Below, one piece after another: positions 18,382 through 28,069 of a stretch of DNA of 64,000 bases. The stretch lies in NCBI GenBank assembly GCA_964188305.1, contig OZ076889.1. The stretch is one strand, 5' to 3'. Origin of the DNA: Podarcis bocagei (taxonomy: Eukaryota). The notes beneath the pieces were generated by a model. The model saw nothing but the letters and a program-made list of their open reading frames with translations. It did not search any database and was not told where the DNA came from. Made by a program: the position numbers and the translations under genes. Each line of letters begins with the position of its first letter. The stretch's first letter is position 1.

Positions 18382-18516
18382 CTCTAAGCGATGAGAAATT
18401 TCAGCCAATTTTGTTATGGCCGGTTCCTTGTAAACGAACTCTTGTTCATCGAGGTCTCCAAATTTAGTCCCATAAAAACCAACACGGAAGTATGTACCAA
18501 ACATCCGCTTACCATC
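18382..18516 (-). CDS. DOCK7: DOCK7 exon ([DGK][42 protein letters not shown]); alternative acceptor starts exon at 18507
   Basis: cctag|GAT GGT AAG|CGG ATG; 135 or 126 nt, phase 0-0. Confidence 0.95.
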
Positions 18517-20716
18517 CTAGGTGCAGAAAGACGAATAGCATTTCAATACAAACGCCCCGTCACATCTTTTCATTGCTTTTAACACTCCCTTTGAACACAA
18601 TGCCATGCAGGAACAAACAAACCAACAAGTCGGACTAAAGAGAATTGTAAACCAGTTACAGCAAAAAAAGGGGGGGCACACTAAAATTTAAACCACACAC
18701 TTACGAGATTTATGGGAAAGCTAGCCTCAATCATGCAATGGGATAAAAATCAGTAGCTCGGCATAAGAACGGGACCACTTTAGCTAGCCTAATAGGTTTA
18801 GAAAGCAATGCTGGCAATAGTCAAGAAAGCAACCTTACAGAAAGGAACACTGTCGTGGCTATTTGCTTTCTTGACACTGGTGGAGCAGCACAGATTTACC
18901 ACTGGTTAGGTTGGTGTCACTCTGAGTTTGGACCAAGCCAAATTTCCAACACCTAGCGGGTTTGGATCACTCAAGAATCATTAGGGATTCTTGCTGGACT
19001 TCACAGTTTACTTGCATGCTTCCGTTCTCTGGGACTGTGGCCTAAAATATGGCATGGACTATGTCATCATCAGAGCAGAATGCTGAAATAATAAATGTGG
19101 GGAATAATTGGTGTTATCTAATTTGCTCTTTGCAGCTCATCATTTAAGAAAATGGGAATAAAATGGGTTTAAGGGGTGGAGACGGTGCCTTGGATAGAAT
19201 AACTTTCCCCCGCATTTGGTGTGTGGACTGTGAGAGACTGCACAGTGGTATAGCATTATATTGCATGCCCTCTCGTGGTTTCTTCTATATGTGATGGCAT
19301 CAGTGTGATTAGTGCTATGGAAACTAGACTACCGTATGTTTCATTCTGTTCTCTAATAGAGATGAAAGCAGGATCAGGTGGCAACCACTAAACTTTCCTG
19401 TAGCCACAGTCCATGAGAACATATTTCGCATGCTGCTGTAAAATGTTAGTGCCACTGGGATCTCTTGTTTTTCCAATGGTACAATTTGCAGAACAAACAC
19501 TGGAAGGGAGACCTGGTATTGCATCTCCATGCAATTGTATGGATCACTCTGACAATTCACAAATTTTTGAATGCCAATCCATCCTTTCTCCTAGGGAAGC
19601 CTCCCAGGTTCCTCTCCCACTTTTCTTTTGGAAGTCTTTGAGATGCAGAGTCGTGTGTCAACTCTCCACCTATTCACACCCCCTCTATAGTAGGGAAAGT
19701 GACTTCGCAGCGATTCAAAACAGACAAGTTGTTTTGAGCACATAATTTCTGGGGTGAACCATAGTGCTAAACTGCATTCTTCTGGCATATACAGATGCTC
19801 CTGTATTAAGATTCCAAGCAGCTGCTTCCATTTGGCTCAGTGGTAAACTGAGCCGTCTTAACACACCCAACACTTGTGGCAATAAAACTGGGAGGTGGTG
19901 CACACTTATGTGGAAGGCAAAAATGTAAACTGAAAGATAAGAGAGCAGCAAATTGTTTGAAATGGAAGCCACCAAATCTGCAGTTTCTTTCCACCAAGTC
20001 ACAACTGAAAGAATTCACACTGCATGCACATAGTCACAAATATAAGCTGAGAAAAGTACTCCAAATGTTCACCTTTACTCTCATGGCACAGTTATGCTGC
20101 AGCACTCAGAATTATATATAAAAAAGGAGCAATGTGATGCACTAGCTGTTGAACTTTGCATCCCACCCTATCCTTGGTGTCTCTGGGCCAGTAACACGTT
20201 TCAAAAGATGCTTAACAGGAAAAAAGAAGAGGATTAAAATAGATAAACAAAGCCTCCCTCACTAGCTTCCAATTCTAGCTTGAACAGAAAGGATGGACAG
20301 CGATTCGGGATAATGCTCTGGGCCTGGGCCCGGGGGAAACATCATCCAGGGAGACCGTGCAAGAAGAAATTGTCCACCTATGTTAACGGTCAGGATGGGC
20401 ACACAAAAGAGAAACAAAAGCTCTAAGAACATACAAGGATAAAACTCTTTAGGGTCTCGTAAGTCATAATCTGCGTCTCTAATTGTTACTGAAATATCAA
20501 AATGTTGGTGTAGGTCTGGGAGCAACAGCAACCCATTCCTATCAAGTGGTAGTAATCCTCATCTTCATCATTCCCAGGTGACGATGAATCCCCAGGTCTC
20601 AGGTAGCGTGCATTATTACTACAGTCAAACTTGGAGAGCACAAAGACATTTCTGGTGGTTGTTATTTTGTAACCTGAGAAAAAAAGTGCACATTCTCTAA
20701 ATGGAGTTATCAAGTA

Positions 20717-20954
20717 CAGTGGAAGCTTGGTTCCCGAACGGTTTAGTTGCCGAACAAATTGGCCTCCAAACGCTGCAAACCCAGAAGTGTTCCGGTTTGC
20801 GAACGTTTTTCGGAAGTCGAACATCTGACGCGGCTTCTGCTTGAGTGCAGGAAGTTCCTGCAGCCAACTGGAACCTGCACCTTGGTTTTCGAATGGTTTC
20901 AGGAGTCAAACAGGCTCCCGGAACAGATTAAGTTCAAGAACCAAGGTACCACCG
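20717..20954. mobile_element. Tc1/mariner-type MITE
   Basis: TA|cagtggaagcttggttc...gaaccaaggtaccaccg|TA. Confidence 0.8.
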
Positions 20955-26293: not shown

Positions 26294-26308
26294 CTCCCAG
26301 CCAGTACT
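26294..26308 (-). CDS. DOCK7: DOCK7 15-nt microexon (STGWE)
   Basis: Long U-tract...ttacacag|AGT ACT GGC TGG GAG|gtaggt; phase 0-0; matches the recalled HQ-STGWE-RMFG form of human DOCK7. Confidence 0.88.
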
Positions 26309-28069
26309 CTGTGTAATAAAAAGTAAAACAAAAAAACAAAAAACAAAAAGGTATGTCACAGGAACAAGACCAGCTCCTTTTCAAAGGCCAAAACACAACC
26401 ATCAACAATACGGTGCTATCCACTTGAAATGGCTTAGCTGCCACACATTTAAGTTAGCCTTTCGTTTCATAGCCCAGAATCAATATTAAGTATGAAGAAG
26501 CTCCATTATCGGGCACTGGAAATCGAACGTAAATGCAAATCCTCTGGCAATCGGAAATTATTACATTGCATTCACCATTCCAGCCTGAAGTTCAGCCACT
26601 GAAACCCAGGTTAGTCCTGCTGGAGGAATTCAGTTTTTGAGCTGAACGGCATGCTGTGGAACACAATTGCAATTCCCAAGTAATGAATGGCAATGCTCAT
26701 TTTGTGTCATTGTTGTTTATATCCATAAAGCAAAATGCAAACCATTCTTCATTTGTGCTTGAGTTCCAGTTAAAAATAATCATATAGCACAACCAGTTGT
26801 CCAAACAGTATCTCCCTGCTAAATTCAGGAAGTAAAAATGTAACCAAAATGGAAAATAACAGCCTCAATCTAGCAGAACCTCTGGAGGCCCTGCGCAGAT
26901 ACAAATGCCCTCATTTATCAGTATATGGCCAACAGCTGGCTGCAATTTTGTGCCCAGGCACCCACTGTTCAGCTTCAAATCCTGGTTTCAAATGATTAAG
27001 GGGGCATGCTTAACATTAGCTTTCATGTTAATTAACCATGGTTAAATTCCGCTGGCATTAGCCTGAACTGTCTGGGAATGTGCCTTAAATTTTGCTTAGA
27101 GTCTAATCTGATCCCAGCTGCTGTGGTGCCAACCTGCCCTTGTTTTGGCCCCCACATACCATAGAAAATTTAGCTGTTGCATTCATCAACATGGAAGAAG
27201 CAGGACCGCATTGAGTCACATGCTCTTCTCTTGGTATCCACGTGTGCTGCATGAATGTCTGCAGAGAGGGGTCCTTCATCTCTATAACTATACATGCGAA
27301 AACCCCGTCCCACCCCAACGTTCGTGCTGTAGATGCAGACATGGCAGGGCACAGACTGGACTGTGTGAGATGGGAGAGGGCTGCTTGCAGCAGCCTCACT
27401 TCTTCTTCCCTTGTTGATGAACATGGGAGCTTTAATGCCTCCACTGGGCTCTTCTCTTGGCCCATGGAGCCATCTTTCAGTGACACTTCCAGCCCACTTC
27501 TCCACACCCAAAAGTAGGGTCATTCATCACTACGCAGCCTCTACAATGCAGGTCACGGTTTGCACAAGCAGAGAGATGTTGCAGCACCAAAAAAGAGATA
27601 CCTGCCAAATAGGTAGCTCAAAATGCAAAAGAGTAAAATTAAATCCCCAGGCTGTCCTTCTATGTATAGCTTTGGGCTGCAATATTATACCTGCTTACTT
27701 ACAGCTAAGTAACTCAATGGGAGTAAACAGGATTGCAGTATGAAAACACCTTAACTACAGTTTCACATGTTGTGAAGTCAGTCTCTAGCCTGGAAAACAC
27801 AAGTAGAGAATGAATTTGTAGCACACTACATGATAGTGACCTGACTTAGGTGAAAGGCTCTGGAAAAATTAGGACTGATCTGATCGCTCTCGTTGCCTAG
27901 TTTTGCTGATTTTTTACACTTTGCAATATTGTCCACAAGGTCTCCATATTTTGAATGCTTTGATGACCTGGAAAATAACTGCCATTGAGGTTTCAATGTA
28001 ACTTGAAGGGGAAATGACACAAATACTTTTAAGGATCTCTGCGCTGCAAGCAAGAGCCCAAGTCATTAC

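Follow-up and report, generated by a model that had tools for sequence, protein, structure and literature searches.

A conserved 15-nt microexon and a tandem acceptor at the lobe A/lobe B linker of DOCK7 in Podarcis bocagei

Between the exon that ends the DHR-2 domain's lobe A and the exon that begins lobe B, the DOCK7 gene of Podarcis bocagei holds two predicted optional coding pieces, a 15-nt microexon encoding STGWE and a 9-nt acceptor extension encoding DGK, and the locus thus raises the question of whether these pieces are chosen independently or whether one replaces the other. We addressed this in a 64,000-nt stretch of contig OZ076889.1 (GenBank assembly GCA_964188305.1), here called the window, on the minus strand of which the features of interest are found. 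As a sequence feature, the microexon is the orthologue of an annotated event. We consider it likely that the window carries the orthologue of a known DOCK7 module in which STGWE replaces DGK as an either/or linker swap, and we infer that the module is used in this way in P. bocagei. The parts of the module are as follows, with a slash marking each splice boundary:

28070..28201, minus strand: exon that closes lobe A of DHR-2 in DOCK7, 44 codons, phase 0, ending in AAA ATA GTT CAT CAG (KIVHQ)
28069, minus strand: donor of the KIVHQ exon, CAG/gtaatg
26312..26356, minus strand: extended U-rich polypyrimidine tract 5′ of the microexon, 81% pyrimidine and 71% U at -45..-4
26294..26308, minus strand: 15-nt microexon AGTACTGGCTGGGAG, encoding STGWE, with acceptor ttattacacag/ and donor GAG/gtaggtaatg
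26185..26293, minus strand: conserved intron flank 3′ of the microexon, with the inverted repeat GCCCACA..TGTGGGT at 26225-26203
18508..18516, minus strand: 9-nt acceptor extension GATGGTAAG, GAT GGT AAG (DGK), with the proximal acceptor tag/G at 18516 and its AG at 18518-18517
18382..18507, minus strand: first DHR-2 lobe B exon, 42 codons, ending ...SHRLE, with CGC TTA GAG/gtgaga as donor

The intron running from 28069 to 18517 is 9,553 nt long, and the R codon of the lobe B exon lies 7,786 nt from the microexon donor. The AG of the distal acceptor (18509-18508) is formed by the final two bases of the DGK extension, after which the exon starts at 18507 (aag/C), and the lobe B exon is thus 126 or 135 nt long depending on the acceptor, and begins and ends in phase 0. 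With or without the microexon, and with or without the DGK extension, the reading frame is kept and no stop codon arises. An earlier note on this stretch, made from the letters alone, had described the microexon with its donor and U-rich tract, the tandem acceptors and four in-frame products; we found every one of these elements at its coordinates, and the four products follow from the uniform phase 0 of the boundaries.

The microexon was set against every in-frame, stop-free AG..GT candidate of 3–27 nt in the 9,553-nt intron (n = 256), and only the STGWE exon had both an upstream pyrimidine content of 75% or more and a donor match at 7 or more of 9 positions; as the sole candidate to pass both splice-signal filters, it is not a product of chance. 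Its upstream tract (-45..-4) ranked second among the 256 candidates. The sequence ctgtgAc, with its A at 26356 (-48 from the microexon), is a possible distal branch point of the microexon; tinamou, catfish and electric eel also have this CTGTGAC motif. A single TGCATG (RBFOX-type hexamer) was found at 26108-26113 on the minus strand, 181 nt past the microexon donor, with approximately 0.05 such hexamers expected by chance per 200 nt.

Four DOCK7 loci (the window, tinamou, catfish and electric eel) were compared at the DNA level. Within the microexon, ACTGGCTGGGAG is identical in the latter three, flanked by acag/ on the 5′ side and /gtaggt on the 3′ side, and the tandem acceptor, yAG/GATGGNAAG/(C/A)G, is kept in all four, with K always encoded by AAG. 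Past the microexon, the introns of the window and of tinamou are near-identical over >110 nt, and a core of this flank (AATGCTT..CCCACRTGTGC.AGC.GTGGG) is also found in catfish and electric eel. A 9-bp hairpin was predicted at 26225-26203 (-10.2 kcal/mol), but a structured element at this position was rejected, as 0 compensatory pairs were seen and the hairpin reflects sequence conservation only. The two in-frame AGs, 9 nt apart, are likewise conserved, and use of both sites is documented for other species, in gene models and in a human crystal construct.

The gene is DOCK7, a member of the DOCK-C subfamily (DOCK6/7/8). The translated lobe B exon is identical at 42/42 residues to the DOCK7 chain of PDB entry 6AJ4, the upstream exon matches Pfam PF06920 (DHR-2_Lobe_A) at profile positions 112–153 of 154 (E = 7e-12), and six exons together share 258 of 262 residues with turtle DOCK7 models. 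The earlier note had placed the variable segment at the junction of lobe A and lobe B, and three observations agree with this: the end of the Pfam lobe A match, the start of the crystallised DOCK7 lobe B/C construct 6AJ4, which begins STGWERMFG, and structure prediction. According to a review, the crystal constructs of DOCK7 and DOCK8 do not include lobe A (PMC8063744). With AlphaFold2 we modelled DHR-2 from a pair of softshell-turtle isoforms whose sole difference is STGWE or DGK, and both models place this segment in a low-confidence coil that links the last helix of lobe A to the first strand of lobe B, with otherwise identical secondary structure and moderate overall confidence (predicted local distance difference test, pLDDT, ~68; predicted template modelling score, pTM, ~0.53). 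These predicted models confirm that the segment is a linker, and are uninformative on the orientation of the lobes.

The STGWE microexon is already catalogued, and STGWE and DGK isoforms are both widely annotated; the two forms that the earlier note gave for mammalian DOCK7 are present in mammalian and other vertebrate gene models alike. VastDB lists a 15-nt DOCK7 microexon (HsaEX0020638), the inclusion of which drops in tumours and increases with SRRM4 expression (PMC7935315), and a 2026 preprint (PMC12871342) places the DOCK7 microexon among the neural microexons conserved between human and chicken, with a human mean percent spliced in (PSI) of 19.8% and its function given as 'unknown'. In zebrafish, the microexon DreEX0028014 has a PSI of 93–97 in neural samples and 2.5–77 elsewhere, with a change (dPSI) of -16.9 on loss of the enhancer of microexons (eMIC) domain (PMC12626424). 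That zebrafish study placed its RT-PCR (reverse transcription PCR) primers in the IHEANRD exon and the (D)GKRMFGT exon; as these also flank the microexon in the Podarcis window, the zebrafish and window microexons are orthologous. The same study records a second zebrafish dock7 microexon, DreEX0028015, of 20 nt, which is strongly neural, shows a dPSI of -57 on eMIC loss and has no recorded orthologue; its length would shift the reading frame.

The window microexon shares its length, flanking exons and coding sequence with the VastDB DOCK7 microexon, which belongs to the eMIC/SRRM3/4 programme. At 15 nt it lies within the 3–27 nt range of neural microexons and preserves the frame, the exon and its intronic flanks are deeply conserved in the alignment with tinamou, catfish and electric eel, and its extended U-rich polypyrimidine tract matches the description of this class in PMC12871342. 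It has no UGC motif within 150 nt upstream; such a motif near the 3′ splice site is a mark of neural microexons, although a sizeable minority of them lack it (PMC12871342). The zebrafish orthologue is classed 'AS' and, given its dPSI of -16.9, its dependence on SRRM3/4 may be weak.

How the microexon and the acceptor are combined was tabulated at this junction in 313 long DOCK7 gene models from the retrieved sets, with xGK denoting DGK and its variants in the first residue:

Tetrapod list: xGK only, 103; STGWE only, 15; neither, 2; both, 0
Fish list: xGK only, 86 (11 of these also without VHQ); STGWE only, 28; neither, 4; both, 0
Cluster members, free of ranking bias: xGK only, 52; STGWE only, 16; neither, 1; both, 0
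All 313 long models: xGK only, 241; STGWE only, 59; neither, 8; both, 0

The xGK extension is thus found in 0/59 microexon-bearing models and in 241/249 microexon-skipping models. In the complete set of pig RefSeq models (X1–X9), three pairs differ exactly by STGWE versus DGK, one model has neither insert and none has both. The coupling of microexon inclusion to acceptor choice, as proposed in the earlier note, is supported by these gene models and is unproven: the tally of 0 'both' and 8 'neither' forms (n = 313) speaks for it, while the design of the zebrafish RT-PCR assumes a product with both inserts.

The competing explanation is that the microexon and the tandem acceptor are two independent events, and that the pattern in the databases was produced by mixtures of tissues (neurons versus all others), by thresholds for the annotation of minor forms and by the propagation of human or mouse isoforms to other species through homology. 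Several observations lean towards independence or weigh against an either/or swap. The tetrapod and fish lists were ranked by a query of the 'neither' type, against which any 'both' form would lose ~15 bits and so could never reach the listing, and their zeros for 'both' are therefore without weight; that 'neither' is rare in the same lists is informative, since the ranking favours that form, and the only sample free of this bias consists of the 73 cluster members. Fisher's exact test on the cluster members gives p ~9e-15, which is not a true probability as gene models are not independent samples: one species contributes many isoforms, and homology to other species was in part the basis of the models. 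The 3′ end of the zebrafish reverse primer lies inside the DGK extension, and the predicted microexon-plus band of 124 nt corresponds to both inserts together. The ranked fish list contains no zebrafish protein. The DOCK7 models without either insert (8/313) do exist, no cis element that would explain the coupling is conserved across the four DOCK7 loci, and in DOCK6, where a homologous microexon encodes SSGWE and the acceptor extension encodes PQ, each of the four combinations is represented among gene models (SSGWE 61, none 22, PQ 11, SSGWE+PQ 8). Together with the missing UGC motif, these points temper the either/or reading. Independence is in turn hard to reconcile with the absence of xGK from every microexon-bearing model and its presence in nearly all others, with X1, the longest RefSeq model, which in pig, Xenopus, softshell turtle and eel has STGWE without DGK even though a 'both' form would be longer, and with the intermediate PSI of many zebrafish tissues, from which unconnected choices would be expected to give abundant transcripts of the 'both' or 'neither' type. 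We regard two independent events as improbable.

Under the either/or swap that we favour, the KIVHQ exon would by default be joined to the proximal acceptor yAG/GAT, which keeps DGK, and in neural-enriched, SRRM3/4-sensitive contexts the microexon would be included and its donor joined to the distal AG, within the AAG codon of K. STGWE would then substitute for DGK, lengthening the linker from 3 to 5 residues (+2 aa) with the gain of Trp and Glu. Acceptor choice would depend in cis on the donor, giving the either/or pattern, and any consequence for function would most plausibly lie in inter-lobe geometry or regulation, and not in direct contact with the GTPase. Nonsense-mediated decay cannot enforce exclusivity, because all DOCK7 combinations stay in frame. 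A more specific version holds that donor identity (GAG/GUAGGU versus CAG/GUAAUG) sets the choice of AG 7.8 kb downstream, so that lobes B and C are re-seated on the dimerising lobe A, altering DOCK7 regulation or the neuronal balance of Rac and Cdc42; we hold this to be unlikely as a whole. Substrate-dependent sampling of 3′ splice sites at the second step of splicing is known in principle from work on yeast spliceosomal DEAH-box ATPases, and may serve as a lead.

Three candidate mechanisms for the acceptor choice were considered and set aside. The DGK extension GATGGTAAG holds a 5′ splice site-like ATG/GTAAGC (18508-18514) that could act as a U1 decoy, but the corresponding sequence is GGAAAG in tinamou, catfish, electric eel and zebrafish, and this resemblance in the window is probably incidental. 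A proximal branch point that sterically excludes the first AG was rejected, as no consistent candidate was found across the four loci, and UGC/SRRM4 motifs near the tandem acceptor are present in the window and catfish and not in tinamou, and are thus inconsistent.

The module combines traits of two known types of alternative splicing. Like tandem acceptors (NAGNAG-type and longer), the window has two close in-frame AGs served by one shared polypyrimidine tract, with few residues added or removed; it differs from typical cases in its 9-nt spacing and its poor distal site (aAG/c), and in the DOCK7 gene models the acceptor tracks the upstream donor, which is not general for tandem acceptors. As in coordinated or mutually exclusive splicing of adjacent events, one of two peptide segments would be placed at a single position in DOCK7, although here this involves a cassette microexon and an acceptor shift in the next exon, 7.8 kb apart, instead of two cassettes.

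A related arrangement is found in the paralogue DOCK6. In the pocket gopher, DOCK6 has a 15-nt SSGWE microexon (cccacag/AGCTCTGGCTGGGAG/gtgagt) 195 nt past KIMHQ, which has GGCTGGGAG in common with the DOCK7 microexon, and this homologous 15-nt exon means that the microexon is common to DOCK6 and DOCK7. The DOCK6 and DOCK7 microexons lie in homologous introns, and in each gene the homologous exon that follows has a tandem acceptor. In the gopher the two DOCK6 acceptors are 6 nt apart (cacag/CCCCAG/CGC, L002:42990-43010) and the extension adds PQ, with TQ, LQ or MQ in other mammals, and not the probably ancestral xGK of DOCK7; moreover, the DOCK6 microexon is included in most gene models. Across the junction, the DOCK6 cryo-EM structure 9VM2 reads KIMHQSSGWERVFG and the DOCK8 structure 3VHL reads DHKRMFG, in agreement with the linker sequences that the earlier note had given for these paralogues, and DOCK8-type sequences show only G/DHK. 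That one gene keeps both paralogue-type linkers, as the note also proposed, is borne out by the homologous DOCK6 microexon and the G/DHK of DOCK8-type sequences, and the comparison supports the view that DOCK7 alone retains both the probably ancestral xGK and the microexon.

A different role for the swap, raised as a possibility in the earlier note, would be to change how lobe B is oriented on lobe A and thereby tune the preference for Rac1 or Cdc42 by tissue, with DGK being DOCK8-like (Cdc42) and STGWE being DOCK6-like (dual). In its favour, dual specificity is known for DOCK6 (SSGWE) and for DOCK7 in its STGWE form, Cdc42 specificity is known for DOCK8 (DHK), and the segment directly precedes the first strand of lobe B, but three paralogues are too few for a correlation. 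In the DOCK6 and DOCK7 structures only lobes B and C touch the GTPase, with lobe A forming the dimer interface (PMC13503879, PMC8063744). The DOCK7 construct of lobes B and C is already dual-specific, so that a hinge to lobe A is not needed for dual specificity, and the AlphaFold2 models gave both variants the same secondary structure with a low-confidence coil at this site. Full-text literature searches for 'STGWE' and DOCK7 DHR-2 isoforms found no paper on the DGK/STGWE alternative or its function, nor one comparing the isoforms. We therefore think tuning of GTPase preference very unlikely: a direct role of the linker in GTPase discrimination is possible but unsupported, and an effect on inter-lobe geometry, on dimer/tetramer packing or on autoinhibition is at least as plausible.

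To place the two linkers in time, the DGK exon was queried against 1.84 billion representative proteins, with distance among homologues judged by sequence divergence alone. Many genomic open reading frames in this search gave ...Q-DGK-RMFG (DOCK7 type), ...Q-G/DHK-RMFG (DOCK8 type) or ...PQ-RVFG (DOCK6 type), and in long divergent DOCK-C homologues the residues immediately preceding R[MV]FG were EGK, QGK, HGK, TGK or DGK, with SxGWE in none of them. The xGK of these divergent sequences makes it the probable ancestral linker. In one such homologue (GCA_019648995.1, L005:39620-39680), ...TRQ runs into EGKRVFG without an intron, encoded by a contiguous CAG GAG GGC AAG CGC. Its CAG/GAG resembles a proto-splice site where vertebrates have the 9.5-kb intron.

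The lobe A end of the linker may also vary. A candidate alternative donor lies 9 nt inside the KIVHQ exon (28070-28079, minus strand, AAAATA/GTTCATCAG), and its use would drop VHQ; gene models without VHQ (...F[GS]KI-DGK or -NGK) were found in several fish, in a tortoise (P0332) and in a peafowl (P0579). If this donor is real, VHQ would join STGWE and DGK as another variable part of the linker. Elsewhere in the locus, a fibrinogen-C-domain gene, presumably ANGPTL3, lies antisense inside a DOCK7 intron in tinamou (L003:33048-41420) and electric eel (L004:13285-15920), and its nested position is conserved synteny.

DOCK7 is an exchange factor for Rac and Cdc42 that is needed for neuronal polarity and is mutated in epileptic encephalopathy. 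The module described here is real, conserved and largely known, with the ancestry of xGK, the paralogous module of DOCK6 and the either/or pattern in gene models being new; its coupling is interesting and unproven, and its link to GTPase preference is a hypothesis. For a conserved neural DOCK7 microexon whose function is listed as unknown, the analysis makes two questions directly testable: at the level of splicing, how the donor in use could decide which of two AGs, separated by 9 nt, is joined, and at the level of the protein, whether the identity of the linker alters the activity, autoinhibition or substrate balance of DOCK7.

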